DNA of 63,787 nucleotides, the filler included, from Pelomyxa schiedti (Eukaryota > Protista > Evosea): NCBI GenBank assembly GCA_020536535.1. It is 4 parts of 4 records of this genome, joined end to end, with 100 filler letters (N's around TTAATTAATTAA, not from the genome) between each part and the next. Parts side by side here need not be neighbours in the genome. Positions count along the whole stretch, not along the records: positions 1 to 31,678 come from JAHLWZ010000997.1; 3 more parts are not named here. One strand, 5' to 3'. Positions 1 to 24,837 of the stretch are shown here, in pieces (position 1 is the first letter of the stretch; every line of letters begins with the position of its first letter). The notes under the pieces were generated by a model. The model was given only the letters and a program-made list of their open reading frames with translations. It made no database searches and was not told the origin of the DNA. The translations under genes and the position numbers were made by a program.

Positions 1-3000
1 CGCGTGGTGACTGCGTTGGTGGTGGTGACGGCGTTTTGTGCGGGGTGTGCATGGACACGTACCGCGACCCAGTGTTCCTCGAGTGCGGCCACACAGTCTG
101 CCGCCGCTGCGCCCTCACCACGCTCGTGGCCGCCGCCAGGCTCGCCGCGCTGCCCACGGTGCCTACGACCACGAAGCCACACGCGCACGGTGGCGGCGGT
201 GGCTGTGATTGTGGAGGAGTTGGCACGATGCCGGGGCCAGGCCAGACAAACGCACCCCAGTCAACCGCTGCGTTGTCTTGTGGCACCTCCTCGTCGTCGT
301 CGTCGTCTGGGTGTCGATGGGGTTGCTGCTCACCAGGCGCAACCGGTGTGTGTGCTGTCATGTCGTCTCTCACTCATATGCTCTAACCTGTCACCTCTCT
401 GTTCCTGTTGTTTGTTTTGCCTACGGAACTAATAAGGACACTAACGCAAAACATACCACAGTTGAAATCAGGTGCCCGTTCCGGTGCACGAGGACAACCA
501 GGACAACCATGTCAGGTGAAAACTTGAAACCAAACACCGCTGCGATGTCCCTCATCGAGAGCAGGAAAGCAGAACTGGTGTGTAGTATTCCATTTTGTTC
601 CAGCAGCCAGCCGGGTTCTGGTCCCAATTGACCTTGACAAAAACCAGACCAAATCGGCATTGTGTGAGGCCCAATATTGCTGTGAGGAACCCACGAGTTC
701 ACCATCCCCTGCCACGTGCAGATGTTCCTCGTGCCATGACATGATTTTTTGCGGGCCTTGTTTCGTGCAGCACCACCAAAGGGGTGCCTTCAGAGCCCAC
801 CAGGTGGTGTCCTCTCTCTCTCTTTTCATGTTAGTTCTGGGCATAAATATTCACATGTCAATCAGGCAACGGAAATTCCACAAGGGACTGCGAAAAAGGG
901 CTCTCTTGCTGCGACAACAACAGCAACAACAATGTGTCCTCACCATGCAAGAAAGGAACGAGATTTGATGTGCTCATGTGGTGTGCCAATCTGTTATTTG
1001 TGTGAGAAAACAGAGAAGCACTCTGGCCACACCAGTGTGCCATTGGTGGACATCGTTTCTCAGAAGGCCTCTGAACTTAAACGTGTGTTTTCGCTCACCT
1101 CAGTCATTGAATTGAAGGACGCATCTCCAAAAAAAAAAAAAAAAAGGACTCACCAAGGAGCTCAATGACATTTCCGAAAAAGAAGTGGAGAGCCTTTCGA
1201 AAATCAACACAGAGATGTTGTCAGTTCCCAAGGTCACCTTGCGCACCCTTTTTCTTTTCCCAACCTCTTTGTTCCATGATTGTGACTGCAAACCACTCAG
1301 GTGATAACTGAGGGTTGCATGTCAATTCTGGCCGATTTGCAGTTGATTCTGGGTGCAGTTGAGACCAGGTGCAAGGAGATCAATGAAATGTCACAGTCAC
1401 TCTCTGATGTGATGAGTTCTCATTCTCCCCTCCCACCAAAATCCCACCAAAACCAACGAAAGCAAACAACATGCAAATCACCAACAACTTTTAACATGGA
1501 ATTCTCACAGCACACAAACTGGGAGTTCAGTGCAACTCGTTGGAAGCCCTTGTGAAGAACCACCAAGCTCTGATATCCAAGGCAAACGAAGTTGCCCAAA
1601 AGCTCCAGGTTGATCAACAGCAGCAACCACTGGAAGTGCTTCAAGCACACTCGATCCTCTCTTCCTTCCTCTTGGACAAACGGTTGCTCCTGGTGTGTTA
1701 TTCGTTCCCACCGTTTCACGTGAGTTTCATGTTTTTGACGTTCTCTCCTTTCACACAGGACACACACAGACTTGAGCCATGTGAACAAGCCAAGGCGGTC
1801 ATGTTCAGAAGTGGACCACGCGACGAGGCGATTGGGATGATCAGGGGGTTTGGGACAGTGACCAAAGGGAGGGTGCCAAACATACCCAGTGGTGGCAGGG
1901 CCCCATTGTGCACAAGGTTCCCATCCTCACCAACAGACACTGATGCGATCACAGTCCAGTGGGACCAACCTCCTCCCCTCCTCGATCAGACCCCACTTGA
2001 ACAAGTCGTGGGCTACAACGTGACTGTCTCCCCCGCAACTACTTCTTCATCAGAAGGAAGAGTGGCGGTGATTGAGGTGAAGGGGAGGGAGACAACCAAG
2101 TGTTATGTGAAAGTGGCCTCCAAAAACGAGGTGAGTGTTGCGGTTTGTGCAGTGAGCCTCGTTGGATCATCTGAGCCAACACAGCGTGCCACTGTGCCAA
2201 GACTCCCACCAACGAGGGAGGTTGAGGTGTTTGCATGGGGTGCCGCCGGCGGCGCAGAGTGTGGAAACCGATTTGCAGGTGGCCCAGGGGGGTTCAGCAC
2301 AGCCAGGATGCTGATCAAGCCCGGCACACAACTCACCATCGTGGTGGGCCAGGGTGGTGCCGGTACCCTTCGCAACTCAGGCAGAGGTGCACCAGCAACG
2401 AGGGGATCATTTGGTGGTGGTGGAAGTGGTGGCGGCAGTGATGGTTTTCACTGTCAGAGTGGGGGAGGTGGTGGTGGGTGCAGTGCAGTGATGGTGGGGG
2501 GTGTGCCCCTCGTCGTGGCTGGTGGTGGCGGTGGCTCCGCAGTGAACAACACCTCGCACGGGTTCGGGGGAGGGGGAGGGGGCGAGACAGGGAGCGCGGA
2601 CGGGGACCAGTGCAAGAGAGCAACACAGGAGGCACCGGGTGGCTGGGATGACAACTCCCCACAGTGCGGTGTCAAGTTCCGCGGTGGTGACGGTGCCAAT
2701 GCCACAGGCACCGACTATGGTGGTGGGGGTGGCGGTGGGGGACTGTTTGGGGGTGCTGGTGGTCACACGTACTACACGAAGGACAGTGGGGGAGGGGGAG
2801 GCAGTGGGTTCGTGGTGGCACCCACAACGACGAACAGCAGTGGCAGTGGCGGTGCCGGTGGGAGTGTGGTTGGTGATGGTGGGAGTATTGTGGGTGTGAT
2901 CAGCTCACGCACCGTGTGTGGCCAACGTGCCACCGGCCTCAAACAAGCCACGACACCACCCGAGACCAACAACGAGCACTACCGCGACGGTGCCGGTGGT

Positions 3001-3150
3001 TGCGTGGCACCAACAAGTGACGACTCGTTTGATGGGAACCACGGGTTGGTTGTTGTTGTGGTCAAGGGGGTCACAACACCAACAGGCGGCACCACCAACA
3101 CTCACGTGTTTGCGTACACTGGCCGGAACCAATCCCTCACTATTAATTAA
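1..3150 (+). CDS. TRIM-like E3 ligase copy 1 (RING-Bbox-Bbox-coiled coil-FN3-glycine-rich domain); 5' end outside window; multi-exon
   Basis: The RING (CGVC..CGHTVCRRC..CPFRC) is joined across a GT-AG intron at 346-461 with a CTAAC branch point. B-box1 is CEAQYC..CSSC..CGPC..HH..H and B-box2 is CPHH..CSC..CYLC..HSGH. These are followed by a helical region, an FN3-like segment (ITVQWDQPP..VVGYNVTV) and a Gly-rich domain starting EVFAWGAAGG..LTIVVGQGG. Stop at 3150. Confidence 0.85.
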
Positions 3151-3432
3151 TGATTGTGGATTGGAGGAACCCTTAAACAGTGCTCTCTCGGAAAGTCCAT
3201 GTGCGCTCTTCACTTTTTTTAAAAAGGTTTTAAACCTTGTGAGGAAAAGCAAAACGTGGCCCTCATGTCCGTAGATAGGAGAGCTAGAAAACTGGTCACG
3301 ATGGCACGTCCATCACTGACTTGCAGGTTTGTGTTTTGAAACACGGCAGTTATTCACTTGGTTGTGACCCAAATACCAGGTGGCAGAATAAAAAAAACAC
3401 CAGACCGCCGATCCTGAGCGACGATAACGAAA

Positions 3433-3855
3433 ATGACAGCGTTCCGGTCCGTTGATTATTTTATTCCGCCAGGTGTCTGAGCCAACCAGTCTAGACACAT
3501 TTCGTCGAATTTGATGTGTTCTTACGCCCGTGCAGACGTTGTGTGCGGGGTGTGCATGGACACGTACCGCGACCCAGTGTTCCTCGAGTGCGGCCACACC
3601 GTATGCCGCTCCTGCGCCCTCACCGCACTCGTGGCCGCCGCCAGGCTCGCCGCACTGCCCACGGCGCCTGTGTCCTCAACCACGGGGACCACGAAGCCAC
3701 ACGCGCACGGTGGTGGTGGCTGTGGTGGTGGAGTTGGCACGATGCCGGGGCCAGGCCAGACGAGCGCACCCCAGTCAACCGCTGCGTTGTCTTGTGGCAC
3801 CTCCTCGTCGTCGTCGTCTGGGTGTCGATGGGGTTGCTGCTCACCAGGCGCAACC

Positions 3856-3941
<86 letters not shown>

Positions 3942-6768
3942 GCTGTTGTACTGTCAATATCCCCACCACACACCCACATCGGCTTTTCTGCTCCAACCTC
4001 TCTGTTCCTGTTGTTTGTTTTGCCTACGGAACTAATAAGGACACTAACGCAAAACATACCACAGTTGAAATCAGGTGCCCGTTCCGGTGCACGAGGACAA
4101 CCAGGACAACCATGTCAGGTGAAAACTTGAAACCAAACACCGCTGCGATGTCCCTCATCGAGAGCAGGAAAGCAGAACTGGTGTGTAGTATTCCACTTTG
4201 TTCCAGCAGCCAGCCGGGTTCTGGTCCCAAATGACCTTGACAAAAACCAGACCAAATCGGCATTGTGTGAGGCCCAATATTGTTGTGAGGAACCCACGAG
4301 TTCTCCATCCCCTGCCACGTGCAGATGTTCCTCGTGCCATGACATGATTTTTTGCGGGCCTTGTTTCATGCAGCACCACCAAAGGGGTGCCTTCAGAGCC
4401 CACCAGGTGGTGTCCTCTCTCTCTCTCTCTCTTTTCATGTTAGTTCTGGGCATTAATATTCACATGTCAATCAGGCAACAGAAATTCCACAAGGGACTGC
4501 GAAAAAGGGCTCTCTTGCTGCAACAACAACAGCAACAACAATGTGTCCTCATCATGCAAGAAAGGAACGAGATTTGATGTGCTCATGTGGTGTGCCAATC
4601 TGTTATTTGTGTGAGAAAACAGAGAAGCACTCTGGCCACACCAGTGTGCCATTGGTGGACATCGTTTCTCAGAAGGCCTCTGAACTTAAACGTGTGTTTT
4701 CGCTCACCTCATTCATTGAATTGAAGGACGCATCTCCAAAAAAAAAAAAAAAAAAAAAAGGACTCACCAAAGAGCTCAATGACATTTCCGAAAAAGAAGT
4801 GGAGAGCCTTTCGAAAATCAACACAGAGATGTTGTCAGTTCCCAAGGTCACCTTGCGCACCCTTTTTCTTTTTCCCAACCTCTTTGTTCCATGATTGTGA
4901 CTGCAAACACAGGTGATAACTGAGGGTTGCATGTCAATTCTGGCCGATTTGCAGTTGATTCTGGGTGCAGTTGAGACCAGGTGCAAGGAGATCAATGAAA
5001 TGTCACAGTCACTCTCTGATGCGATGAGTTCTCAATTTTCCCCTCCCACCAAAATCCCACCCAAAACCAACGAAATCAAACAACATGAAAATCACCAACA
5101 ACTTTTAACATGGAATTCTCACAGCACACAAACTGGGAGTTCAGTGCAACTCGTTGGAAGCCCTTGTGAAGAACCACCAAGCTCTGATATCCAAGGCAAA
5201 CGAAGTTTCCCAACAGCAACAACCACTGGAAGTGCTTCAAGCGCATTCGATGCTGTCTTCCTTCCTCTTGGACAAACCCCTGCTCCTGGTGTGTTATTCA
5301 TCCCGTGAGTTTCATGTTTTTGACGTTCTCTCCTTTCATGCAGGACACACACAGACTTGAACCATGTGAGCAAGCCAAGGGCGTAAAATGCAGGAGTGGA
5401 CCACGCGACGAGGTGATTGGGATGATCAAGGGGTTTGGGACAGTGAGTAAAGGCAGGGTGCCAAACACGCCCAGTGAAGGGAGGGCCCCCCAATGCTCCA
5501 GGTCACCAGCAGCAACACCAACAGACACTGATGCAATCGCAGTCAAGTGGGACCAACCTCCTCCCCTCCTCGATCAGACCCCACTTGAACAAGTCGTGGG
5601 CTACAACGTGATTGTCTCCCCCTCAAATTTCGTTGCTTCAGCTTCATCAACAAAAGGAAGAGTGGCGATGGTGATTGAGGTGAAGGGGAAGGAGACAACC
5701 AAGTGTGATGTGACAGTGGCCTCCAAAAGCGAGGTGAGTGTTGCGGTTTGTGCAGTGAGCCTCGTTGGATCATCTGAGCCAACACAGCGTGCCACTGTGC
5801 CAAGACTCCCACCAACGAGGGAGGTTGAGGTGTTTGCATGGGGTGCCGCCGGCGGCGCAAACAACAACGGCCCGGCAGCGGGTGGCCCAGGGGGGTTCAG
5901 CACAGCCAGGATGCTGATCAAGACCGGCACACAACTCACCATCGTGGTGGGCCAGGGTGGTGCTGGTATGATCTGCCAGCCAAGTGGGGACCCGCCAGCA
6001 ACGAGAAGATCATTTGGTGGTGGTGGCAGTGGTGGAAGTGGTGGCCGCCGTGGTTACCACCTTAGTGGGGGAGGTGGTGGTGGGTGCAGTGCAGTGATGG
6101 TGGGGGGTGTGCCCCTCGTCGTGGCTGGTGGCGGCGGCGGTTCCGCAATACAATTCAACACGCACGGGCACGGGGGAGGGGGAGGGGGCGAGACAGGGAG
6201 CGCGGACGGGGACCAGTGCAAGAGAGCAACACAGGAGGCGCCAGGTGGCTGGGGTGACAACTCCCCACAGTGCGGCGACAAGTTCCGCGGTGGTGACGGT
6301 GCAAACGCAGGGACAGGCACCAGTGACTGTGGAGGAGGGGGAGGGGGTGGGGGACTGTATGGGGGTGGTGGTGGTCACACGTACAGTGTGGGCCAGGGTG
6401 ACAGTGGGGGAGGGGGAGGGAGCGGGTTCGTGGTGGCACCCACAACCACAACGAGCAGCAGTGCCAGTGGGGGCGGAGTTGTGGTTGGTGATGGTGGGTG
6501 TGTTGTGAGTGTGATCAGCTCACGCACCGTGTGTGGCCAACGCGCCACCGCCCGCGCCCAAACCACGACACCACCCGAGACCAACAACGAGCACTACCGC
6601 GACGGTGCCGGTGGTTGCGTGGCACCAACAACCTACGACCACCCGGTTGATGGGAACCACGGGTTGGTTGTTGTTGTGGTAAAGGGGGGCACAGGGTCAG
6701 CCAACACAAACACCAACACTCATGTGTTCAACCACACCGGTCAGAACCAATCCCTCACCATCAATTGA
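3433..6768 (+). CDS. TRIM-like E3 ligase copy 2 (tandem paralog, same architecture)
   Basis: ATG at 3433 (MTAFRSVDYFIPP|DVVCGVC, intron 3473-3535). Exons and introns are nearly identical to copy 1 except for the glycine-rich domain loops. Stop at 6768. Confidence 0.87.
3857..3940 (+). repeat. (GT)n microsatellite at the 5' end of an intron
   Basis: About 42 GT units beginning at the splice donor; the copy 1 intron has only about 4 units. Confidence 0.95.
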
Positions 6769-7624: not shown

Positions 7625-10515
7625 TTATTCAGCCTGGCTGGTTGCTTTGATTGGTTCCTCACCAGAACCGGAGTGTGAGTGGTGCTTCTTCTTGTGACCG
7701 TGGGGAGTTCGGGGCGATATGTCTGAGTCCGCGTTTGTGGGGTTGATGTTTGCTATTGCTGGTACTGTTGGCATTGTGGGAAAGTTTGATAGACCTGGTT
7801 CCGCCTTGGCGGCTTCTTGGTCCTTAGGATAATATTAATGTAAAGTGATTTGTGATGTGGCGGGGGGAAAATGCCTGTGCTATCTTCTCTAGTGTTTCGC
7901 GAACTGATGTGATTTGATTTGAGAGTTGCTGTGCCTTTAGCTCTTTTTTAAGTCGTTTGATCTCATAGTCCTTTTGTTGTGATTGTTAATTCCTCAATCT
8001 AGATATTCTTCCAACCTTGGCATGCAAAGAGGTCTTCAGTTGCTCAATTTCAAGGTCTTTCAGGAGCACTGTGTTTTTAACTTCCTCTCGCATGAGTTTT
8101 ATCATTCGGTCCATGGCAACTATGGTTGCAGCGGCATTGTTTGGGCTTAGGGCACTGCTAGTTGTGCCTCTAATCTCAGCTGTAGCCTCCCGCACGGCCT
8201 CTTTAGAATTGATAGTGGCCACTTCAACCTGACTATACCTTTTGATTTGTTGGTACAGAAAAGATAGGATGTAAAAATAGTACAAATAGTCCCAGTTCTC
8301 TAAAAGAAGCTTTACAACAGCAATGCAATGCTCACTTTCTGAAAACGCTTCGTTTGCATTTGCAGAGAAAATTTTTTGCCTGGCATCAAACTTGAGTTTT
8401 AAGTACCACCGGACCTGTTACCTTAAAAGACATGGCGTAAATACAGTAGCAAGATTGTCGAAACTCATTAGATTGGCCGCTTTTTGCTCTTCAACCTTTT
8501 GATGATGAAAATTGCAACTTTTTCACTATGTGTACCTTGTGCAAAAACTTGCATAAATGGTTAAGAAGAGCAAGATGGGTTTCTGGCAATGTGGCCAGAA
8601 GTGAAGTTAGGGCCTCAAACGCTTTGGTTTTGTCTTTGATAGCATAAACATCCTTAAACCGGTTATAACAGACATAGGTTAAAAGTGGCTCAGGCAGCTC
8701 ACGTAGAAACCTGCTTAAGGATTTACTAAAAGTGGATACACTGGAATATCTCACCTTTTCAACAAAACAGGGGCAACATGTGGCCGTTCTTTGGAAAGTT
8801 CTACAGGCAGCCTTTGATCATATTTTGATAAGGCCTCCTTATTTTGTAAATAGTCCCCATTGACGCGGAAAATCTGAAGAAGTGTTACAGTTATCAAGGG
8901 TAACATGTCGGGGCAACGCCTTGCACATCGAGCAGATTTTCCTCTATGAAACTTGTGGTGTGCGACACAATAAACGGTATGGGAGTACCATCCACTTCAA
9001 TTACTTCTTGAAGGTTTCTGCCAAAGACCTATTATTCTAGGGTGAGATTGCTAGTTTAAGTTTTGTTGTTTACCTTTTTTGTTCCCATATCCTCTTCCAT
9101 GGCTTTGACATAATGGGACAACATGAAATCGAAGACACCAAAACCTTGTGTAGTTGGCTTGGAAAAAGATAATTTTACAACATACAGTTTAATATAGCTT
9201 TATTGTTCATGGCTCGTTCCTTGAAAACGTCGAGTGACAGACATTTTTCTTCTTTGGAGAAAATCTGCAAAAAACCAGTTAAAAAGAACGTGGCATAAAA
9301 ATTGAAGTACCTTTTTTGCAAGTGCTTGCCTGAGAGACAGAAATTCCCCCTAATATTAAATTATTCCCTCCACAGCAGATGTAATACAAAGGTACTTTGT
9401 CGAAAATTCCACCAGCAACCCTCAGCAAGAATGTGCCCACTTCATCAATGACCCGCTTTACTTCATCTTTGCTAACTTCTTTATCCTGATTCAAGTCAAA
9501 TAAATTGAAGACCATATCCAGTTGATCGTCAAGTGTCCCTCTTGTGACTGTCCAGTATCAAATGTTGTGAGTTTCGGAGCGAAGATAGATACTTGTATTC
9601 AAGGCAGTTACAAATTCTACATAATCTACTTTGTCATCTTTCTTCTTGTCAACAACACGGAATATGTTGTCAAACAGAAATTCACTGCGCATGAAGGGGA
9701 AGAATGGCTTTGCCTCTTCAAGTGCAACCGCTCTTGTGTTTATTTTAAAGTTAGAAAGAAAAAAAAAGGGGGGGGATAGCGAGTTTAAATCCAAATCACA
9801 TTGGTTATATCTCACGAAACTCTACACACCCAGTAGGGGCAGCAGAAGAAAACCAGTCCCATAGATACTTCAGCTCCTCCTTCGAAAAGCCAATCAAAGT
9901 GACTTGTTCCGCACGTGAACGCGGTACCACCGGCACACTCAACAGCGGAGTGGAAGACGCCAGCCCACGGTCTCTTCTCTTCCCCCCAGCCCCAAGCTGC
10001 GCACCCGGATTAACCCCCAAAGTCGTTCCTGTCCCAAGACCAGGCGGCGCCAACGACAACGACGACGACGACGACGAGGAAGACGAAGAGGAAGAGGAAG
10101 ACGATGAGGAAGGAGAATTAAGAGGAGGGGAGCTGCCCCGGTGGATCGCGGCGGCGGTGGAATTGACTGACACGGGGGGCGCCATCAGCAGGGCGGTGAA
10201 GCTCGCTTGGTCCAGGCAGAAGCTGCTCTCCACGATCCTCTCGAACTCCTCGTTGACGACCTTGTCGGGCACGGGCGGGGTCGTCGACAGCGGCGACGCG
10301 CCGAGCTCGGGCGACGTCGCCGTAGGGGCCGACGAGCCCTTGTCCTTGTCTCTGGAGTGGAACAGCTTGCCACCGACGTGGAGCCGCTTTATGGTGGCAA
10401 CACCGGAGAAGGTAGCTGCCGGCGTGGCAGTTGCAGCCACAACGGGACTGCCGCCGCTGGTGTTGTTACTAGTACTACAGGATGCCGATACACTGGCAGA
10501 GGGTTGTTGCCCCAT
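7625..10515 (-). CDS. Myristoylated recoverin/NCS-type EF-hand plus RhoGAP protein
   Basis: Starts MGQQPS. NCS-type segment FSKEELKYLW, EF loops DKKKDDKVDYVE and DLNQDKEVSKDE, and RGTLDDQLDMVFNLFD. RhoGAP motifs VFG..IPFIV..GIFRVNG..LKRFLRELPEPLL..NLMSFDNLATVFTP. C-terminal coiled coil, stop at 7625. Confidence 0.85.
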
Positions 10516-10778
10516 TCCACGGAGGGTAATCCGGAAATGTCGTTGGTTTTTTTTTGTATTCTTTGTACGTTTTTCTTGTGTTTTGAACTGTGCTCTTTTT
10601 TTTAAAAAACCGAAACGAGACGAAGAGGAGAGATTTTGGCAGTGGCATTCGCCAAAGTCAAAGACAAGAAGCTAACTCGGCGGAGATAACATAACTTACG
10701 GGAAAGAGTGGAACAAAGATATTACTGTGGAAAAGGAAAAGGGCTTGTGTGGTTGTGCTTTTGGGCAAGAGTAAAGGT

Positions 10779-11978
10779 TTATGGCCTCCGCTTGGTGATC
10801 AATGTGATTCCATCCACCAGAGGTAATTGGAGAACTTCAACTCTCTGTGACGCGTTGGGTTTGGAAAGATTACAATGGAATGAAATACCTTGTCAGACAC
10901 TACAAATTTATTGAATTTATCCACTGAGAGAGACTCTTTTACTCTATGATTGTTGGGAATAATTCTCAACAGCAATCCTCTGAGCCAATCATGTGCAACA
11001 AGCCCCCCAAAGAGCGTGTTGTCTACAGCCTTGACAATAACTTTAGCTCAAAAGAAACACACCGGTCATCATACAATTATGCCCGTTTCAGAGAGTAGAT
11101 TCTGTTCTAATATTTTGTTGAGGTAGTTTATCTGGTTCCCTTTGTCAGCATCTATCAGGATTTGTTAGAGCCACACAGCCGTTTCTTAAGGGTTACAAAG
11201 CAATGGAGAATACCAATGAAAATAAAATCAAACTGGCCCTCAGCTTTGTTCAAACTGTGAAGGAGTGAGTTTATTCAAAATCTGGGATATTGAGAGGTGT
11301 TGAGTACTAGTCCATGGCTGGCCCTTCAAATAGTGTAATTTTGTCCCCTATTCTCTTGTCTCCTCGCTGGAAGTTTTTCCTGGCAATCTCTGCTGTCTAG
11401 TGGTAGACAGTTGGACTACTATCAACAAAAAAAAAAGTGCCCCAAGCAAAGGGGGAGAGGGAATTGTACCTCATGTTTCAATTCACATGTTACGATCTGC
11501 CCATCCTCAGGCAGTGCTTCAGCCACTGCCCAAGCACTGTATCCAGTGAAGCAGCCCAACTACGTAAGTTTTTCAATGCCAAGGCAATAAAAAAACATCT
11601 AGACCTCTAGAGCACGCTTTGCTTTGGAAAATTGAACCAGGAACTTCAAGAATTGTGCCTCCAACGGCCCACATAGCATGATAGAGTCCCATCTTTTCTT
11701 TGGAAGCAACGTGTTAGAGGAAAAAACTGCAACTCCACATGCCACCCTCCCGATACTAAGTATAAAGGAATATTAGCCAATCCAAGCATTCTACCAAAAA
11801 CACCAACCGAAGTGTCTTGCTCGATTTCGTCAGAAATATGTGACACCCCCGAGGAATGGCGTGTGCAATATATGTCCTCGTCGGTATCGTGGTTCATTTG
11901 CTTGTAGCGAAGCCACAAATAGACCCACTCACACACGGCACCTATCACTATAAGCCCTACCACTGTCCAAATCCCCAT
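10779..11978 (-). CDS. Class I SAM-dependent O-methyltransferase (Methyltransf_3 / COMTD1-like) with N-terminal TM helix
   Basis: Spliced motifs LGCFTGYSAWAVAEALPEDGQIVTCE, ITLFEGPAMDS, FDFIFI|DADKGNQINY, GIIVCDN-like segment, and C-terminus VEVLQLPLVDGITLITKRRP*. Confidence 0.85.
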
Positions 11979-12175
11979 CACTCAGTGCCTCTGTGAGCGT
12001 TTTTTTTTTTTACTGTGTGCCTTGTGGTTGTTCAAGGGGTGTGTGTCTGATCAATAATGGGGTTTTGATTTTTGTTTTGGCAAAACTGGTTACCCCGCAC
12101 TGTATTAAAATCCTCTTTCAAAACTTTTTTTTTGCGATAGTTGTAGTGCAGTATCAATCACAGTTGGCTACAATT

Positions 12176-15100
12176 TTACAGGAGTCCTGCCTCAACAGAT
12201 TGTTCTGTGGGTTGGGGAGGAGGAGATAAGTTGTTTGGTGAAGGAGACTTGATTGGGGGTGTGGTGGATGCCTCCAAGTTTGGTGTTAGAGGTGGGGAGG
12301 GCGATTTCCCCAGTGGTGGTGTGATTGATGGTGTTGGCGTTGGTGTGACAGGTGCTGTTGCGGCAGCAAGGTTTGCTACTGCAGTGTTGAATTCCTCCTG
12401 CAGAACCTTTACTATCTCGGGGAAAGATGGCCGCAGAGAGGGGTCATGCTGGAGGCAAGCTTCAGCAAGTTCAATAAATGATAATGACACATAATTCTTT
12501 GCTGGGAGGGTACGCAGATCAGAAGGTCTGAGCCCTTTAAGTATATCCTGGTCGAGAGAGTTGAATGGGGATTTGTTATTGTTGACCTGGACGTACTTGT
12601 TTAAGTTCATGTACTCTAGGGATAATTTTTGTATTGCCAATGCTATCTCTGGTTTCCCTCAGGTATTTTGGAGATTTAAAGAATTCCTGTAAGAGAGTTG
12701 GTGTTTAGCACAGTTACAACATCAGTACCAACCATATAGGGTACAGAAAGAGCAGCACTTTCCCAGAGAATCAGTCCAAAGCTGTAGACATCACTTCGGT
12801 GGTCATAGCCATCAGAAGATGCCCACACTTCTGGAGCCAGCCACTCCCAATTGGCTAAAGCTCCGGCAATTTTCGGACCCAGGCGTCTGCTCATGCCAAA
12901 ATCCTTACAGGGGGGTTTAAAAGGGTTAAATTGTGAGTATGAGTTACTGCAATTTTGCCTGTCCAAAATAGGCTTGAGGGAGCCCCATCGAGGAAAATGT
13001 TAGCAGATCGTAGATCCCTGAAAAGTGTGAAAAATGGGAGGAAAAAAGAGCGAGTGCCTGTGAATAACTGGTGGAGACAATGAGTGAAGAAATTCCATTC
13101 CCCGGGCAGCCGTTAGAAGGATATGCATGCGAAGAGGAGGTGGGCAGTCATCCTATTTTTGTGAGATGCCATGGAAAAAATGAGGTATACTTGCGCCATG
13201 TCAACATCTTCCTCAGGATGAAGAAAGTGAGCAAGGTCCCCACCAGTGGCAAACTCCATAACCTTTCAAATGGTAAGCCCATAAAAAAAGGTAGTGAAGG
13301 AAAAGTGAGAGGCTTTTTTTACAAGAAAGAACGCACCATGTATGCGGGTTTCACGGTTACTCCAAATAAACGTATCAAGTTGGGGTGGTAGAGGCATGAC
13401 ATCATAAAGGCCTCCTTCTGAAATTCAACAAACTGTTCAACAGCAGTAGCTTCAGTGGAGTTGTTGGGTTGAATTAATTCTTTGATAGCAACCAAGTTAT
13501 CGCTCCACGTTCCTTGGTATACCTGGATAAGTTGGTACAAATTGAAGACAAAAAAAATTACATACTGCACCAAACCCTCCTTGTCCTATTTTTTTTATTA
13601 TGGAGATTCCATCAAGTACAGTCATATCTGAAAACACAATGTCAGGAGCGATGTCTTTCACCTGAGGAGAGTAGTCAGTCATCTAATCCATTGAGAAGGA
13701 TTCACTTACGTCAATGGAAACCGATGAAGCTCCACGCACACATTCTAACCGCTCATTGGATATGAAAACTGACACAGCATTTTCATAGGAGAACATTGTT
13801 GCAGTAGCGAAGCGCTCACCGCCCGTAAGGCAATGAGTGCAGGGGATGAGTCGTTTCATTGTGTGTGTCAACTTTCTATAAAAACTCTCAGTCAAGTTCT
13901 CCACAAGCTCGTTGACTGATCTTATCAAAGATTGGGTCTGTGAAATGACTACTTCTGTGGAAGTCGGGAGGAAGAAGTGTATGTCCAAAGAAAAAGATTT
14001 GGGGTCATATTGCAGCTTTGCCCACTGATTACGTGGAAGTGGAGGGAAAGGTATTGTTTCCTCTGTATTACTTTTATGAGCAACGACAGCACCGTTTAGC
14101 CAATAATCCAATACTTGTAAGTCAGATTGGTGGAATATCTACAACAATGAGTGTGAATTTAGCCATACTATTTTAGGTTACATGAACTAGAAGCCGGCCA
14201 AAAAACCCAAGTGGCATGAAAGCAAAATGGAAAATTCTTCCTAAAGCACTCAGTTTGTTTCAGCATGCCCCATGAAAGGAGGTACCTTTGTGAGACCAAC
14301 CGCTTGTCTCCAGGGCACCTTCAAATAGAAGTTGCACACGGTCTGGTTCTTGATCAGGCAACTGGTAAAAAGTTATTTGGCCACAATGTAAGGATAGCAA
14401 AGGAGAACAAACCATAAACGGGACTATTAGGGATGTATTATCTGGAAGGAAGTGCGCCACAGAAAAATTAACTAGAAGTTCAGCTAATGAATGTGTTGGA
14501 ATCCCTTCAAAGCCTTTCCAAATCTATGAGATAAGTGATTAAATAAACGAAAAAATGTTGGAGATTACAAGGCTTTGCTGTGATTCTGTGATAATGCCAT
14601 CCTTTTTTCCAAATGTCGAAGAGAAAGATATCACTTGAGCCTTGGAAAAGGAAGTCATTGATATGTTTGTCACGTTCAGGTTTACCATAATATCAATAAC
14701 TAATTGAGGATCTGTCACAACCCAATTTTGAAATGCTGTAATAATCCCCGCGCTGTTTGGAATCTGAGTTGTTTAAGGAAATAGGTGGACATACTCGTTG
14801 AGAAATTTGGTTAAGGCAAGAAAAGTTTCTGTGGAGTAACTAATGCCAGTGGAATCGACCCACGTCCTGAAAGTGGCTAGAGGAACCCATCTCTCAGAAA
14901 GCTTTTTTTGAATAACTTTCGCCACCCTTTTGTATAGAACAGGCTGCTTGGTAATAAGTTGCTGCAGAGAATGGTCAATTGTTAGCCGGAATTGAAGATA
15001 GAATTGCCTTGGAAACGTTTATTACAGTCGCCTTCAATGCTGTCATTCCTTCTTGATTGACAGGATTTACTGGTACCATAGCTTTGACATTGGAGAATGT

Positions 15101-17083
15101 TGAAACAAGAGGGCCTATAGTATCACTCATTGACTGTGCTGCTTCTTCGAATGAGGGAAACCTATCCGCATGCGTCCCCACAACAATCACAGGAGGCATA
15201 TGTGGAGGCCTCGAAACAGCCTCAATTTGATGCAACCTAAAAGTATTATCAGTGGTATTTCTGTAGTTAAAAAACCGAACCAGTAACTAAGCCTATTGCG
15301 GGATTCAAGGCCCTGGCTAAGATCACACACCAGTATATAAGTAGTGGACTTCCCACTTAAAAAGAATTGGTGAGTGGGATAGAAAACCTCCTGCCCACCT
15401 GGGTGCACGTCAAAATTAAATGTAATGAGGTAACAAATACCAAAATCCCAAACACCAAAGTGATATTTTTTATTCTCGGCTCGTAAGGTGAGGCTTGAAA
15501 GCTTAATGCCATTAGTTGACAGATTTTCTCCCAAGGAAAAGTGCTTGTCATGAAGTAATTTTATAAGTGTTGTCTTGCCTACACCTTCTTCCCCAACAAC
15601 CAAAAGCCTTGACGCAAATCAAATTTAAATTAACACACGAAGAGGTACCGTATTATATCCCAGGGTTCGGTGGCTTGCTCTGATTGTCTCAGATAGTTGA
15701 TTACATTTTGTGTCCCACTGAGGGCAAAGCCAGAAGGATACCCAACAAGTGGATTGAATCCAAAAAATATAGACTTCAGTTTTGGAAGCCTACACAGTGC
15801 TGTAGGCAGTGAAGTGAGGCTATTGTTACACAACCGCAGATACTAAAATTTCATTAGTTGTAGGCAGGAAAAAGTTCAAGAAATACTTCCAAGTTCTCTA
15901 GTAGGCTTATCTCACTTGGAAGAACTTTCAATTTGTTTCCATAGAGATTGAGATGTTGGAGGCGGGTGAGACGAAAAAATTCAGGAGGTAACACTTCAAT
16001 GGCGTTGCGGCTCAAAATGAGTTTCTTAAACGGCTTTAAGGAGTGAACCAGTGTGGAGAGTTCATTTGGCCGAAGGGAATGTGACAAATCGAGTGTGAGG
16101 CGGCAATTGAGAAGTGTGTTTAGTATTTCACTACGGGGGCAAGCTGCCTTCAGTGCTAACTGAAGAGTGGTTTGCATCGTTTGCTGGTCGATATTCATTC
16201 CCTTGATTAAAATGAGGATGAAGGATGGGAAGAACGAGGGTACTTTTTTGCTTATCCAACTGCCTGGTTGGTCATTGAGAGGGCGCTTTTTCTTTGCACA
16301 TGATCGCCATAAGTCTGACATCTCCTCTAGCCCTCCTTCTTGCCCTACACACTGACACACAAGCTGTGGATTCAATTCCGAAAGAGCAATTATAGCCTTC
16401 CAAGAGAATAGCAGAATGTCACGCCGTCTGGAGAATTTGCACATCACACGCGTTACGTAAGTGGCAAGCTCATTCACAGCACTATCTTCTATATGCTTGA
16501 GCACAGGGAGCAACTCCAGTGCATGCAAAATGCAGTTAGGGCCTGATGAAGGATTGGCCAGTATCTCCTTTAGGAATGTGAACACAGCAGCCTCGTATCT
16601 ATTAAATTAGTTAGTGGGCATTAGACCAGTTCCTACTCTGTTGCACACACTTTGGCAATCTTGGCGACATTGTAGAGAGCAAGTAGAGAACATCTGGTGC
16701 CGATACACCCACCAAAGCACGGCGAACAGAAGGAACTAAACACATTGAAATCAAAGTTTGTGTGGCTCTAGAATCGGCGCCAAAGGGAACGTTTTCACTA
16801 CGTGTACGATACAAACTGTATGCCATTGCCAAGGCATTTTTCTGTGCCCAGTCAATGATGGGACATGAATAATAATAAAAAAAAACCTGGAGAAAAATGT
16901 CGTCAGAGAACCGATCTTCAGTTAGTCCGTAGAAGTTTTCAACAGCATTGCCAACTTGATGACAGTGAGGCCACGTTCAGGAAACCGAATTATAAAAGAT
17001 GGCTTCGGGAAAAACACACAAGGCTCAGCACGATATGATGCAATCACAACCCCTCCATTACGTTGGCCTCTGTCTCCACTCAT
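12176..17083 (-). CDS. Roco family kinase (helical/ARM-like, LRR, Roc GTPase, COR, TKL kinase); 5' end uncertain
   Basis: LRRs ([24 protein letters not shown]). Roc motifs [18 protein letters not shown]|[18 protein letters not shown]. Kinase motifs IGQGGFG, VAIK, HR|DLRSAN, DFG, WLAPE, DVYSFG. Confidence 0.9.
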
Positions 17084-18988: not shown

Positions 18989-21900
18989 TTAGCTGTCTTG
19001 GGGCTGTTGTGGCTCGGATGAGGTTGTTGTCTCTGAGTCTGTTTCTTCCGTGATTGTGTGTGGGTCGCCAGTAGATACACTCATATCGCACAGCTCAACA
19101 GTGGTGGATCCCGCGAGGATGTTGTCCAGCAGTGAGTCGACATTACGCACCAGGCCCGTGATGTTCTCAGCCACGCCATTGAGGGCCGCCTCGTACCGGT
19201 GAGGAAGGTGGTCAGTGAACATGTGTGGACTGATCACAATGTGTGCAAACGACCGGTTTTTGACCAGAACCATGGTGAAAGGGTGCCGCTTGGCTGGAGC
19301 AGCTGCGGTTGTGGTTGCCGTAGTTGCTGTTGTAATTGTAGTTGCGGGTGTGGATGTGGATGCGGAAGCGGAAGCGGTTATGGGAGTGGTGCTGCCGGGC
19401 AATGGAAGGCGTTGCTTGAGTTGCTTCTGCATCTCTGACTGTAGGACGGTTTGTAGGTGCTGCACTTGCTGAGGTTGAAGCCATGAAACGGGTGGCTGAG
19501 GCTGTGAGGAAGATATTGGGGTTTGGGGGTGCTCTGTGAGGGTCGGTTTCGTATCGAAGCTTGGTAATAGCAGCGGTTGCGATGTGGGTGTTGTTATGCT
19601 GGAGAATCTTGAGGGTAGACTGCCTTGCAGACTATCACTTACGAGTGGTTGAACTGGAAAAGTCGGTTGCGGGATTAGATGAGATTGTTGGTTGAATGTG
19701 GAATTTGGTTGTGTTGCTGTGAAAGTAGTATTCGGAAATGGCATTTGACTGGACGCCGTGTTCCATGGAGAGGGAAATGCCCCTGATTGATGTGATAGGG
19801 AAAATGGGTTAAGAGGTTGCACTTGTGGCTGCATTTGAAAAGGGTTTATTGGTGTTATTCCCACTTGGGGTTGTGCCGAACTGAATGGTGCATTTTGTGG
19901 TAAACGTGTTACATTTAGAGGTGCTGTGTTTACTGTTGATGGCCAAAACGGTTGGACATGTGCTTGGGTCTGAGGAAAAGGCTGTTGCGCAATTGTATTT
20001 GGAAACTGAGTAGAAATGGGAATCTGAGGCAAAGGGGGGAGAGGCGGAAGAGGGAAAGGGGGAAGGGGTGTAACCGGCCGCATCGACGGCCATTGTGCCG
20101 GCGGCTGTGGTTGAGTTGTGAGTTGTGTGGGCTGCGAGTACAAGGGTTGTGTCAAAGGCTGAGATACGTTTGGTTGACTTGGCCATGCGGGAAATGGTTG
20201 TGTATTACGTGGGACTGTGGTATGTGGTTGAGGGAAAAATGGAGCGGCAGAATGTTGAAGTGGTTGGGGTTGCACAGCAGATGGTAAAGGTGTGTTTGTA
20301 ATTGAGATGGGGAGGTGGGTATTCAAAGGTGTAATGCTTGTGCTTGGTGACGTACTTGCAAAGAGGGAAGGAAGATTATCAGTAGTTCCTTGTGCGGTAA
20401 TTGGCTGTGGGTGAATTGAAGATTTGAGTGGGAGTAAGGGGTTAATAACGTAGGGCTTTATTTGGCTGGCAATGGGAGGAGGTGACGGCATTGCGTTTCC
20501 TACTTCAACATGTCCAAGTTTGTCTTGGTTTGGTTTTATGGCTAAAAGCGGAGAGGATGGCAGCCTGTTGTCCAAAAAGTATACCTCTCCCCCAGGGAGG
20601 AGACAGGCTTGAAGCATTTCTGATGAGGAGTCCATTGTTGAGTCAAAATTTGCCTGGCAACTGCATTGTAACATTTTTGCTATCTTCTTCTGAAGGTAGG
20701 AACCTAGAAGCTACAAAATTACTGTCAGGAACCATTTGGCAAAGTAAAAATGAAATCATTCTTGATACTTGCATTTACCTTGCCAGAGGCCATGTACTGG
20801 AAGAACCTTTGTTTATTGTTTTGTGTATGTGAAAGAGTTTGCTTTATCAGGCCTTTAAATATCTGGAGAAAGATGTCATCGTCTTTTCCAAGCAAGAATT
20901 AATGAATCACCTCCAGAGAACCATAACTCAGCCGCGGTACTATGTCGTCACTGTAGACAAATGAGGACACTATTTTCTTTGTCTCCGGTGCTTCAGCAAG
21001 AGTTAAACTCAACACAGCTGCAGGCGCAAATGAAAATGCACGTACACGCCATTCTGGGTGTTTAGCAGCGAGTAACATGGCAAGGAGGGTGGAAACACCA
21101 CCACCTAAGCTATGACCAACCACATGAATCGGTAGTGCTGGATGGTCACTTACAGCTTGTTGTATGTGGGGTAGAAGTTGCTCAAACTTTCGTCTGGCAC
21201 AAGTGAGAATTCCTTGGTGAACATTTCCCTTGCGACCAAAAAATTCAAATGGCTCGTTTTCAGCAACAAGGTCTGATACCTGGTGAGTATTAAGAGTAAA
21301 AGAAAGGATATGTAACAACGGTATCATGAAGGCCCCAAGTGCCTCGAATAGAAACGACAATGCACTGCCTCTCATGATCTACGGCACAATAATGTCCTGG
21401 ACTGAATCTCGTGCTTTCCCACTGTTGTGAATAAATGTCAGATGGTAATAGTCCAGTGTGTTTCCTTAGGGCATCAAGATTTGCCTTTTTATTGTTTGCC
21501 AGAAGAGGAGCAATCTACAGGCACAGTAAAAGAATTGTTTGAGTTAAATAACTTTACAGTTGATGCAGGCACTTTGGTCCCTATCAAGAATCGTCAGTAA
21601 ACTGTTAGAAATCGATTGTTTATACCTTCGACAAAATTTGTCATGAAACCACCCATTAATTTCCAACCATAGCTCCCACTAGAGGAAAAGTTATGACAAG
21701 GTAATTAATGTAGGAAAGTTGGCCAAACCTTGCGTGCAACATCATGTCAGCAACTAAGGTAGCATATTCTGGGTCTGTTACTTCCTGCAATCAATGTTAT
21801 TCCCTCGCGAATTGAAATTTTCCATACCTTAATACTTTCTGGAGGTGATGGATTTCCATTGTAATATGCACTTAACAAAAGTATACCCATAAAAAGATCC

Positions 21901-24604
21901 ATTGGAGGAATGTCTAGGAAATGAATAGGTACAATGATTACTGAAATATTCAACCTTGGAAGTACTTGCAACATATTGCCCTGAGTTAAATGGTTACTAA
22001 AATACCATCACGAGTTAGGCTTACCATATCTTTTTACAGGCATCTTCCATCTCACTTGAGAGAATTAAGGACTTCATTAATCCAGCAACACTGAATCCTA
22101 AACTGGTTACAGCCTTCCATGATGATACTGGTATTGATACAATCGTTCCTAAAAAAAAAACATTGAGATTTCCCAAGAAAACACAAAAACAAACCAGTAA
22201 GCCATTTCAGCCAGCCATCCCCTGGTTGTTGTTGTGCGTTCATATCTATTTCATATTCATCCGGGTCAGTGAGAATCCATTCTGTCTCCCAGTTGAATTT
22301 GTCACAGTAATCAGGAATAACACAGCTGGAAAGAATTTTTGTATTACTGTTCCCAGTATTTTCTGGACCAAGTGTAACAGCAGTAGGTTTTCCCTGGTCA
22401 CCAGTGGTACAGTCAATCTGTGCCTGGCTTGAAACCCCAGGTGACTCACCACCTGCTTTAGCTTTTATATCCTCGTTGGTTGGAGGAGTGCTCAAAGCGG
22501 TTGCTGTGCTGACTGCTTTATCAGATTGTGTTGGTGTCTGAGAGGGAGGAAGGGACCAAAGGGGATCATATAGGGTAGGAGTAGGAATACACATGTCAGA
22601 GATTCTTGAAGTGTGTGTTGGTTTGTCATTAGATACAACTTGATTCTCTGTCGTGATTGGGTATGCAGATAAAACGCCAGGTTTCCCCAGTTGATCACTT
22701 GGAGGTTCTTGTGCTGAGATCAAACTCACAGCAGTAAGAAGTTCAAAAGGAGAATCGGGAAGTTCTAAAAGAGTAATGTTCTCTGTTGGTTCTTTTGGTT
22801 CTGGTGGTGTATGTTGGGCTGTCGGGGATCCTTCTATTTTTTTCGAAGTTTGGCTTAGATCTACTCCTAAACTATGCTCACCTAGAGAAGGTGGAGTGTT
22901 ATGTGCATCAGTGTGAGGCTCATTATCATGTGTTTCTGCCGCTGAAGACTTAGGGTCCTGTTGCAAGTTCGGCATGGATGAACGGTCTTGGCAGGTATTT
23001 GTTTGGGGGATAATAGTAAATTGCTTTGGTTCTGATATCAACAACGATCCTATTTCAGATTTGGGGGGAAGAACCGGGTTTGGAGCAGATTCTAATTTGG
23101 GATACAAGGAAGTTGGTGGTATTACATGAATGTCTGCCAAGGCCTTTGAGCTAGAAGCTGACCCAGAAACTGCTGTCACATCAATGAGAGCTGGAGCTGT
23201 ATACACCTGGGTTGCATCATCTGTACTGGTTTTTGTTTCTGTTCCAATAGCAGAGCTCTCACCTTGTGTATCACTCCTCCTTTTTGCCAGTGACAATCCC
23301 GAAGAATTGCCTTGGGCACTGGAAAGAGAGGGAATAAAGGATGGCGTTGTGAGGGGGTTCGGGTCGTATGAATCTGCTGTTGGGATTGAAAAAGGTGTCA
23401 TTTTCTGGTGCTCTTCCACAACTGGCAAGATGCTAGGGGCAACTATGTTCTCCTGATGAGAGTGCGCACTCCCATTTAGAGAATCACTTGGTGAGTGCTT
23501 TTCTGAAGGATCTGAGCCGGGCTCTTGATTCGGGGATGTAGACGGAAAGTTGTCATTACTGGTGACGTGGGGTAGAATATCATCCACTGCCAAAATACTT
23601 GTATCGACTGGTGTTACAGCGTCTAACCCGACATCCACCGCAGGTTCATCATGCCCTATTCGAGGAATACTTCCTTCGCTTTCATGGCTTCCTTCCAATT
23701 GCACAATCTCCTTTTCCTCCACCACCAGAGTGTCTTGAGCGGGTTTCTTCACCTCTGCCAAAGTAGCTGCCTCTCCCCCCACATTCACAAGACCCACCGT
23801 GCCCTGTTGGTCTCCCACAGAGACGCCAACCAGTGGATCCTTCTTCTCAACCTGCCCCTCTTTCAGTACGTGTGGCTCGACAGCACCAAGAGCTACGCCC
23901 AGCTCCGCAACGGCGCTATCAGCAGCAGCCCCAGCAGCAGAATCATTGCCCAAGCCAGCGCCCGTGCCACCCACCGGCTCAGCCTCGATGACGCCCGGCT
24001 CAGTGTCCTCCTCCGCTGTCCCAATCACCAAACCAGAGCCCCCACCAGCATCACTCCCGCAAGTATTCGCATCAGCGCAGGCAGACACGGCGGCACCATC
24101 TGCACCGGCAGCAGAACCAGAATCCACGCCATCAGTGGGAGTAGCAGCGCAACCGCGGGCGGAGCCGAGCGTCGTCGAGGCCGTTGTGGCGCCGACTACA
24201 ACAGCAACAACGATCGGCGTCGGCGGGGCAACCTCAACAGCGGTCCTCATGTTCGCCGCCGCGCCCACATCCACATTCACATTCACATTCGCATTCACAT
24301 TCGCACTCACACCCACGCCTTCCTCGCCACCGCCATCGTTACTATCTACATCATGTGCATATGTCGTCGTGGGCGTCGGAGTCGGCGCCGTTGGCTGTGG
24401 TGCCACAACGACGGGTGCCTCGGGGGTCGCGGGGGGCGCGGCCACGGCCGGTGCCTCGACGGGAGGGGGCGCGGGAGACGACGGCGGGGGGGCGGAGGCG
24501 GGGGGCGTCGCAGGCGGCGGGGCGTCGGTGGCTTGGTCGTCGTCGTCCTCGCCGGATGACGCGTCGTAAAACACTTCGCCGTCGCTGTCATCGTCACCCG
24601 ACAT
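18989..24604 (-). CDS. Class 3 lipase (DAG-lipase-like) with long acidic/disordered N-terminus and Pro/Gln-rich C-terminus
   Basis: Motifs VHQGIL, VVGHSLGGG (nucleophile), AFSFAP and DDIVPRLS in exon 20899-21280. Large low-complexity terminal exons. ATG at 24604. Confidence 0.85.
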
Positions 24605-24837
24605 TCGTGGTTTTATAGGAATCACCGCTGATCAAGTTGATCAGCTCTCAGCGGTAAGACTTTATCACTTGGGCCAACTCACAAAGTGGAGCCGAGTGTA
24701 TATATGGGTCACTATTGCCAGAGCATTTTTTTCCTGCAAATGTCTTCTGCCACTTCATCCTTTTTGGCAGACCAAATGACGTCGTTCCTGCTTCTCAAAC
24801 ACACACGTTGTGGCGCCGGTTCGCCCCTGTCGGCTAT

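Follow-up and report, generated by a model that had tools for sequence, protein, structure and literature searches.

Tandem TRIM-type genes with a C-terminal glycine-rich domain

The window (the whole 63,787-nucleotide stretch of DNA from the anaerobic amoeba Pelomyxa schiedti that was analyzed) contains, in its JAHLWZ010000997.1 part, two tandem and intact 8-exon genes, W1 and W2, whose products share the domain order RING, B-box1, B-box2, coiled coil, FN3-like domain, and ALK/LTK-type glycine-rich domain (GRD). The genes and all domains and loops described below lie on the + strand. W1 (3..3150; exons 3-345, 462-577, 648-803, 866-1082, 1147-1232, 1301-1415, 1511-1692, and 1759-3150) encodes 868 amino acids as far as seen, its first codons being removed by the contig edge; W2 (3514..6768; exons 3514-3856, 4065-4180, 4251-4406, 4475-4691, 4761-4846, 4913-5027, 5125-5288, and 5344-6768) is complete, with 873 amino acids. 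Both reading frames are open across all 8 exons, and the 7 introns of each gene are all GT-AG. The NCBI models at this contig are shorter (713 and 686 amino acids; Pelo_15237/15236), and an RNA contig from a family member supports the 4181-4250 intron and adjacent joints of W2. A block at 393..1575 (+ strand) is 96 to 100% identical to 3992-5189, introns included; judging from sequence, it arose by duplication or conversion not long ago and postdates exon 8. Between the two genes lies a 91-bp MITE-like element (3381..3471, strand not given) with 13-bp inverted ends and a 2-bp target duplication, which has at least 400 candidates genome-wide and is probably outside the TRIM system.

The N-terminal RING (W1, 39-487, Pfam zf-RING_UBOX E 2e-9; W2, 3544..4090, C3HC4 motif) has all eight zinc ligands and scores above the cutoffs of Pfam RING families, with an unusually long spacing. 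It is split by a low-complexity insert of ~80 amino acids and by intron 1, and its final ligand pair is a CxxxC encoded in exon 2 and kept in the paralogs. Because of the long insert and the CxxxC end, the E3 activity of the family is uncertain. Both W1 B-boxes exceed the Pfam cutoffs (B-box1, 648-803, ANCHR-like_BBOX E 3e-6; B-box2, 866-1082, zf-B_box E 3e-6) and have homologous counterparts in W2 (4251..4406 and 4475..4691). The predicted coiled coil that follows (W1, about 1041-1692; W2, 4650..5288, about 139 amino acids, exons 4-7) displays a helical hydrophobic periodicity of 3.55 (p=0.001 versus shuffles). Its FN3-like neighbor (W1, 1864..2205; W2, 5449-5805) is a weak Pfam match in W1 (fn3, E 0.036), and its ESM Atlas leads are FN3 domains (0.83 to 0.85). 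In its predicted domains the pair is of TRIM/RBCC layout, with RING, two B-boxes, and coiled coil in order. Pfam scans matched neither a COS box nor PRY-SPRY, the GRD standing in the C-terminal place, and gave no MATH domain either.

The GRDs of W1 (2218..3147; PF12810, E 1e-11) and W2 (5821..6765; E 7e-9) are 80% identical and score 45 and 36 bits, respectively, against a gathering score of 24.5. An AF2 model is confident (pLDDT 91) and folds the domain as a TNF-like β-sandwich plus a polyglycine-II lattice; a single-sequence fold of FN3 plus GRD was of low confidence (pLDDT 35). Structural matches include ALK (Z 12), the phage Pam3 fiber (Z 10.3), and the Bxb1 tail-tip protein (Z 9.9), and profile comparison with LTK gave E 7e-11. 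The ALK/LTK assignment made in the initial annotation is thereby upheld by PF12810 and the ALK match, and the modeled domain is of ALK/LTK type, with a TNF-like plus polyglycine-II fold. Its TM score to ALK is just 0.3, versus 0.67 to 0.80 to phage proteins, the upper value being that for an uncharacterized, mostly phage, protein cluster; as an analogy, the adhesin of a phage tail, here mounted on a TRIM, would describe it better than an antibody. A GRD is also found at the C terminus of a TRAF-zinc-finger protein (L039) and of a more distant B-box-coiled-coil protein (L030) of the same genome, which suggests a general substrate module in P. schiedti.

Variable loops across an expanded family

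The initial annotation had drawn attention to seven short loops that are replaced between the two genes. All of these pairs were located, with conserved flanks, at 2257-2274, 2365-2391, 2434-2457, 2542-2565, 2695-2718, 2770-2781, and 3013-3030 in W1 and at 5860-5877, 5968-5994, 6037-6063, 6148-6171, 6301-6330, 6382-6399, and 6628-6648 in W2; a further variable loop of W1 lies at 2935-2955. The loops of W1 are ~50% apart from those of its tandem sister, and no paralog in the assembly matches them. That only these two copies exist, an outcome that would have refuted the annotation, is not the case: the family comprises about 15 to 20 P. schiedti genes (a minimum of 15 copies, with RING exons numbering about 19), for which reason chance divergence of two copies was rejected, and loop variability falls at identical columns in 11 complete paralogous GRDs. 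The seven loops, rich in Tyr, His, and Asn, differ across all paralogs, and the surrounding scaffold is conserved (dN/dS 0.06 to 0.2). Y, H, N, W, and F make up 27% of loop residues; the share is 6% in the T/S/G linkers, which vary just as much, and 14% in three Pelomyxa proteins taken as background. The p-value of this contrast is inflated because the alignment rows are kin. Loops 1 and 4 have one fixed length in every complete copy, and in loop 1 a 3-nt deletion is offset by a duplication, with AAC repeats also visible. All loop indels are multiples of three, leaving the frames intact. The strand/loop alternation of the AF2 model and the homology to Pam3 gp24 would place the variable loops distally, by topology rather than by coordinates.

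Two members are pseudogenes (a frameshift in C795 and a stop inside the RING of C800). Searches, run per exon or with the NCBI full-length paralog P0008, found no close relative outside the P. schiedti genome among 5.8 billion proteins, among 1.84 billion representative proteins, or in the metagenome and viral contigs searched, and the B-box/coiled-coil region retrieved Pelomyxa proteins only. A simple motif scan, which is weak in that it missed even the known B-boxes, detected RING motifs in Pelomyxa matches only. The top ESM Atlas leads for the family are Class I TRIMs, at a weak 0.79 to 0.80. A literature search that reached few subscription journals found no description of a two-B-box TRIM with an FN3-like domain and a GRD.

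Rates and recombination in the last exon

The 5′ parts of W1 and W2 had been described as almost identical. This is correct for exons 2-6 (0 to 2% different) and introns 2-7 (3.6%) and fails for the RING exon 1 (7% plus indels); exon 8 differs by 10 to 15%, and its loops by about 50%. Other paralogs show discordance of the same exon: C800 and C943 are 5% apart in exon 8 versus 26 to 60% elsewhere, and C1046 and C1630 form a clade in exon 8 (100/99) that is rejected in exons 2-7 (p-AU 0.004). On these alignments the last exon evolves apart from the 5′ half, with swaps and homogenization among paralogs, and for this reason the intron identity of W1 and W2 cannot date their loops. The loop-versus-intron contrast drawn in the initial annotation is in part a mosaic effect of exon 8; in young pairs, loop divergence is still 2 to 12 times that of introns or flanks (loop pN 15% versus introns 7.7%, p=0.016; in another comparison, 19% versus flank 1.5%). 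Exon-8 swaps emerged from the paralog comparison that had been proposed, and no individual conversion tract survived multiple testing; PHI on the scaffold alone was not significant. Wholesale import of exon 8 into W1 and W2 from different lineages is not supported: the two still group as sisters, with 100/99 for the FN3 part and with weak support for the GRD.

The usual codon test (M2a) on the GRD gave an omega of 5.6 (2dL 136, p 4e-30), and fast sites are confined to this domain (for exons 2-7 the 2dL is 0, and for FN3 it is 1.3). Once the silent rate was freed, silent change proved about 3 to 5 times higher in the loops and loop omega fell to 0.85 to 0.94, on the side of 1 that the initial annotation had named as speaking against its proposal. 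A “hot but neutral” class beats positive selection by 24 log units, and simulations separate both models cleanly; the gap falls to 5 units with multinucleotide changes allowed. Silent and replacement changes climb together 4- to 5-fold in about 14% of codons. Codon-wise positive selection is thus not established, and it was dropped as the whole story. The loops change as blocks, and block replacement by conversion and slippage indels fits better. Silent divergence drops with distance from the loops (rho −0.21, p=0.013), a gradient that is not significant inside Gly-only or non-Gly columns alone. In old pairs, silent distances are 0.30 to 0.41 in loops, 0.37 to 0.44 in exons 2-7, and 0.13 to 0.19 in the scaffold.

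Candidate function and comparison with known systems

Our best reading is that the TRIM-GRD family is a diversified cytosolic recognition E3 family evolving like fish finTRIM and NLR-B30.2 genes. An immune-type receptor repertoire is suggested because exposed loops differ in nearly every copy, and we assign a probability of about 55% to the view that these cytosolic TRIM-type E3 ligases form a lineage-specific family, evolving by birth and death, whose members act as variable receptors for the surfaces of foreign microbes or viruses; against this counts the fact that the same fold in ALK binds an endogenous ligand. If known TRIMs are a guide, the coiled coil would form an antiparallel dimer holding two GRDs, B-box2 would promote higher-order assembly on a repetitive target, and the clustered RINGs would then attach ubiquitin either to that target or to the TRIM, for proteasomal or autophagic removal. 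Germline gene conversion between paralogs, aided by the conserved G-rich scaffold DNA, may together with slippage indels rewrite and reshuffle the loops, and selection would retain distinct loop sets. The targets, at a guess, could be cytosolic or vacuole-escaped prokaryotes or viruses; P. schiedti carries both cytosolic and vacuolar prokaryotes (PMC10579272). More tentatively, this free-living amoeba may have built a TRIM5/finTRIM-like intracellular immune repertoire independently, by fitting a phage-adhesin-type polyglycine domain to a TRIM scaffold with two B-boxes (and to a TRAF scaffold); the distal loops of that domain, diversified by conversion between the conserved G-rich motifs, would separate invaders from cytosolic symbionts.

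Loop omega of about 0.9, the old-pair silent distances (loops close to exons 2-7, scaffold lower), and the deletion, duplication, and AAC repeats of loop 1 would be expected if tolerant surface turns gather slippage indels and indel-linked mutations while conversion homogenizes the scaffold, the GRD having a fixed host substrate or a structural or oligomerizing role. We consider this relaxed state unlikely: the young-pair excess goes beyond relaxation alone, it fits poorly with the constant lengths of loops 1 and 4 and with a Y/H/N richness unlike that of the T/S/G linkers, and the family expansion is left unexplained. Somewhat less probable still is a role other than defense, in recognition of self or of partners, in which the variable receptors sort or limit resident symbionts (cytosolic Syntrophus and Methanoregula, vacuolar Vesiculincola) or target diverse host proteins, glycans, or transposon products. 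The obligate multipartner symbiosis (PMC10579272) and the presence of the GRD in the L039 and L030 proteins favor such a role, while the fast turnover is not obviously driven by stable vertical partners.

A dedicated machine rewriting the loops (cassette conversion, DGR-like mutagenesis, or somatic hypermutation) could account for the joint rise of silent and replacement changes and for the unmatched W1 loops, yet it is improbable. A DNA search of the genome gave whole paralogs or contig-edge fragments only, with no short donors, so that donor cassettes or a DGR were rejected as the loop source; changes are not limited to adenines, the sole reverse transcriptase in the window is of LINE type and 23 kb off, and contigs are without clear loop variants between runs, a comparison of low power. 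With neither donor cassettes nor a somatic mechanism found in that search, the description of the GRD as “antibody-like” was an overstatement. An assembly artifact, in which the pooling of amplified cells and the resolving of repeats gave rise to chimeric or allelic “paralogs,” is the least credible account. Seven amplified cells were indeed pooled (PMC8887013), several copies stop at contig edges, and C961 and C2383, 95% alike along a whole short contig, may be alleles rather than paralogs. Against it, unitigs bearing W1 and W2 loops recur in independent runs without other letters, single contigs hold tandem pairs, and the frames are intact, with loop indels in multiples of three. Collapse of the near-identical middle of W1 and W2 is unlikely because unitigs shared by the two have about 1.3 to 4 times (mostly 2 to 3 times) the depth of copy-specific ones in three runs, which is supportive only, as MDA depth is uneven.

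Class I TRIMs (MID1/TRIM18, TRIM9, 36, 46, and 67) have the order R-B1-B2-CC-COS-FN3-SPRY. The Pelomyxa proteins follow this order from the RING through both B-boxes and the coiled coil to the FN3-like domain but are amoebozoan, carry the GRD in the SPRY position and an ~80-amino-acid RING insert, and have no detected COS box. Class I TRIMs are conserved and single-copy, whereas the Pelomyxa family is expanded and loop-variable; the likeness is one of domain order. With fish finTRIMs, NLR-B30.2 genes, and TRIM5alpha the family has in common lineage-specific expansion, near-identical N-terminal parts, a variable C-terminal recognition domain, and exon shuffling. Conversion of the B30.2 exon crosses group boundaries and goes with a low dS (PMC2657112; 10.1101/027151), and an exon-swap pattern like that of Pelomyxa exon 8 is described for zebrafish NLR-B30.2 (10.1101/027151). 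Their recognition fold is unrelated, however, and in Pelomyxa the dN/dS above 1 is lost with a freed silent rate.

The GRD fold itself is shared with ALK/LTK and with the Pam3 gp24 and Bxb1 tail-tip proteins. In ALK, however, the domain is present once, in the extracellular part of a receptor whose ligand is fixed; compared with the phage adhesins, the Pelomyxa GRD is attached to an E3 module and would lie inside the cell. The distal tip of Pam3 gp24 is hypervariable and has been proposed to bind the host (PMC9608196). T-even gp38 likewise has hypervariable segments between conserved glycine-rich motifs, and these loops set its receptor specificity and host range (PMC3157838, PMC12892980); it serves as an analogy only, since it is missing among the listed fold matches.

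TRIM-type ligases outside animals include TRIM37-like subfamily A and the Dictyostelium DdTRIM/TRAFs, for which amoebal cell-autonomous defense has been proposed (PMC3503706, PMC5758549). These carry a single B-box, with or without MATH, and Dictyostelium has only one copy, in contrast to the two B-boxes, FN3-like domain, and GRD of Pelomyxa. To our knowledge, published surveys report only TRIM37-like (MATH) TRIMs outside animals, with one TRIM in Dictyostelium, a picture that is changed by an expanded two-B-box, FN3-like family in an archamoeba, whose C-terminal domain is not listed among the human TRIM classes. Diversified receptor families are, as far as we know, poorly known in protists, and seven loops with a dozen natural variants make non-self recognition by a symbiont-bearing phagotroph testable. 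The GRD further suggests that eukaryotes use the ALK-type domain for binding through its loops, and that the domain could be a compact natural scaffold for binders that tolerates loop changes.

Gene structure and genomic surroundings of W1 and W2

The tandem TRIM-like genes W1 (positions 3 to 3150, its start cut by the contig edge; 868 amino acids) and W2 (3514 to 6768; 873 amino acids) lie on contig C997 and are each open through eight exons and seven GT-AG introns. Searches took the spliced models one exon at a time, with the NCBI paralog P0008 as the full-length query; the closest look-alikes of the latter, MID1, TRIM46, and TRIM67, serve as a lead only. In the exon-wise Pfam scans a C3HC4 RING, B-box1, B-box2, and an ALK/LTK-type glycine-rich domain (ALK_LTK_GRD, here GRD) were above the cut-off, and the FN3 match was weak. 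The RING is interrupted by an ~80-amino-acid insert and ends in CxxxC, while the 139 amino acids from B-box2 to exon 8 display coiled-coil periodicity (P = 0.001). An RNA-run contig of a close family member has exons 1 to 4 spliced at the predicted sites, including the joint of the 70-nt intron at 4181 to 4250; its exon 4 is apparently shorter than that of W2, so the expression evidence concerns a family member and not W1 or W2 themselves. Because NCBI models skip B-box exons or fuse paralogs to neighbors such as Sec8 and MORN (Pelo_15236, Pelo_15237, Pelo_5496), the architecture is hidden from domain databases. We found no published description of a RING-B-box-coiled coil-FN3-like-GRD arrangement.

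A long TG microsatellite (3857 to 3940) opens intron 1 of W2 and is absent from W1. Many introns here start with GTGTGT, and one has a poly-A run ahead of its AG. A 91-bp MITE-like element occupies 3381 to 3471. Its inverted ends are 13 bp long, its 2-bp target duplication varies, candidate copies across the genome number at least 400, and read depth is about 10,000×. Domain matches on the minus strand at about 8000 to 16600 (LRR, Roc, kinase, EF-hand, and RhoGAP exons) probably represent a Roco kinase plus a RhoGAP gene, or a single GAP-bearing Roco as in Dictyostelium. Also on the minus strand, at 20899 to 24625, a long ORF of acidic, low-complexity sequence is followed downstream by a Class 3 lipase exon. 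Two long ORFs of 286 and 364 amino acids (26234 to 28386) had no Pfam match, and a reverse transcriptase with its frame broken in places (29369 to 31678; RVT_1, E = 4e-28) is apparently part of a non-LTR retrotransposon reaching the contig end.

A gene family with a separately evolving exon 8

The genome searched comprises 52.4 Mb in 5337 contigs; the published P. schiedti assembly was made from seven amplified cells (PMC8887013). The initial annotation had left room for W1 and W2 being the only two copies, and we found 18 GRD matches (11 complete, identity 64 to 100%), 15 close B-box2 copies, and about 19 RINGs, with the same 5' half in every family copy that has enough upstream DNA. One copy (contig C795) is frameshifted and another (C800) carries a stop within its RING match, which points to birth and death of copies. 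Protein, metagenome, and viral sequence searches revealed no close relative of the family outside this genome; the best protein hit was P. schiedti Pelo_18991. B-box2 also matched, more distantly, at 15 or more additional places (C84, C598, C1185, C1583, C712, C389, and others), partly clustered with four on C84 and three on C598, which indicates that the TRIM-like repertoire of the amoeba exceeds this family.

The GRD also occurs in other settings. Locus L039 (C792, 612 to 2229) combines TRAF-type zinc fingers (weak, E = 7e-4), a coiled coil, and a C-terminal GRD in the position of the TRAF MATH domain, and a domain scan of L030 (C227, 6738 to 7886) gave a more distant B-box2-coiled coil-GRD gene without the FN3-like part. 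L033 (C45) has a related GRD. A GC-rich fragment from a JGI metagenome contig (P0002, locus L059) contains filamin/Ig and a GRD whose first loop resembles the W1/W2 family; a different eukaryote with a TRIM-filamin-like protein may be its source. The GRD thus repeatedly replaces the substrate domain in E3-like architectures.

Sequence comparisons show that exon 8 has a history separate from the rest of the gene. Between W1 and W2, divergence is 3.6% for introns and 6% for silent sites of exons 2 to 7. At silent sites of exon 8 it is 15% (FN3) and 12% (scaffold, the conserved remainder of the GRD), with P = 0.0007 versus introns, and the loops differ by about 50%. W2 and the C258 copy show the opposite trend (40% in exons 2 to 7, 13% in the scaffold), the C800 and C943 copies diverge by 5% within exon 8 and by 26 to 60% elsewhere, and C1046 and C1630 form a firm clade for exon 8 that is rejected for exons 2 to 7 (p-AU = 0.004). 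Across eight close copies, scaffold silent distance is 0.06 to 0.19 regardless of the age of the 5' half, as if their exon 8 were a single recombining pool; an equivalent pattern in zebrafish NLR-B30.2 genes was interpreted as conversion of the recognition exon (10.1101/027151). PHI was significant for the GRD with loops, FN3, and exons 2 to 7, and not for the scaffold alone; single conversion tracts were weak. L004 (C2383) and L031 (C961) are 95% identical across the whole short contig, with divergence highest in the GRD (5 to 7%; flanks about 1.5%), and are possibly hyperdivergent alleles.

Rates and causes of loop variation

As initially annotated, loops are replaced on a conserved polyglycine scaffold: variation falls in the same columns from paralog to paralog, and the glycine runs are invariant. 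Tyr, His, Asn, Trp, and Phe make up 27% of the loops, 6% of equally variable T/S/G linkers, and 14% of a small background set. Some loops are common to non-sister copies, and loop 1 displays compensating in-frame indels and AAC slippage. The high loop dN/dS anticipated earlier appeared in the standard codon test of the GRD (M2a versus M1a, 2dL = 136, omega 5.6 at 10% of sites, of which most belong to the named loops and several to the linker and the C-terminal tail; no positive selection in exons 2 to 7 or FN3) and fell to 0.91 once the silent rate was fitted separately (loop dS 5.8; scaffold dS 1.9, omega 0.21). A class with both rates raised 5× and omega 1 outperformed positive selection by 24 log units, with no further gain in fit when its omega was freed. 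Simulated positive-selection data favored the selection model by 20 to 51 units and simulated hot-neutral data disfavored it by 20 to 60, so the real GRD data group with the latter, by a margin that drops to 5 units when multi-nucleotide changes are allowed. The fits thus indicate that loops change in blocks.

The earlier contrast between loops and W1/W2 introns overstated loop speed, since the converted middle of the genes is younger than their exon 8; the excess itself persists in uniform young pairs, namely C444a/b (loop pN 15% versus introns 7.7%, P = 0.016) and C961/C2383 (perhaps alleles; loops 19% versus flank 1.5%). The neutral rate is the ceiling for relaxed constraint alone, so that loops which are merely tolerant, on a homogenized scaffold, would not account for these pairs, and we consider this reading unlikely. 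Recognition of a partner or of self is somewhat less probable still. The farther a site lies from the loops, the lower its silent divergence (rho = −0.21, P = 0.013), a trend that is not significant when amino-acid classes are taken singly; selection preserving distinct loop blocks under conversion would also lift linked silent divergence, and local mutagenesis would produce a similar picture. A dedicated mutator acting on the loops is improbable, as a genome DNA search found no short donor sequences, and we give hardly any credence to an artefact. Selection on the loops is likely, although not proven.

Fold, proposed function, and comparison with known systems

An AlphaFold2 model of the GRD (139-row alignment) reached pLDDT 91 and pTM 0.91. 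The fold matches ALK/LTK at Z 11 to 12, the fibre of cyanophage Pam3 at Z 10.3 (rmsd 3.0 over 154), and the tail tip of Bxb1 at Z 9.9, after which scores fall to Z 3. Over the whole domain, phage proteins are the best matches of the model: the top one has TM 0.80 over 272 residues in a cluster that is 89% viral, and a cyanophage S-RIM12 protein has TM 0.67, versus 0.3 for ALK. Variable loops in the model are ~4 to 8 extended residues beyond a beta-sandwich strand, or alternate with a proximal turn, which would place them at the far end of the domain. Paired glycine-rich motifs of Pam3 gp24 are hairpins with hypervariable distal tips, proposed to bind the host (PMC9608196), and such segments determine the receptor in T-even gp38 (PMC3157838, PMC12892980).

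P. schiedti houses prokaryotes free in the cytosol and within vacuoles (PMC10579272); these residents are an occasion for cytosolic receptors and no evidence of a target. We favor, at a probability of about 0.55, that W1/W2-type proteins are cytosolic recognition E3s. By analogy with phage adhesins and with the established biology of TRIM5 and TRIM21, GRD loops would bind a repetitive foreign surface with avidity from the coiled-coil dimer and B-box2, and the clustered RINGs would ubiquitinate, leading to degradation or autophagy.

By the domain rule the family, judged from its predicted domains, counts as TRIM, and as neither class I nor TRIM37-like, the latter being the sole TRIM kind that PMC3503706 reports outside animals. 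Its likeness to finTRIM and NLR-B30.2 proteins lies in the mode of evolution, and its likeness to the phage adhesin tip lies in the fold.
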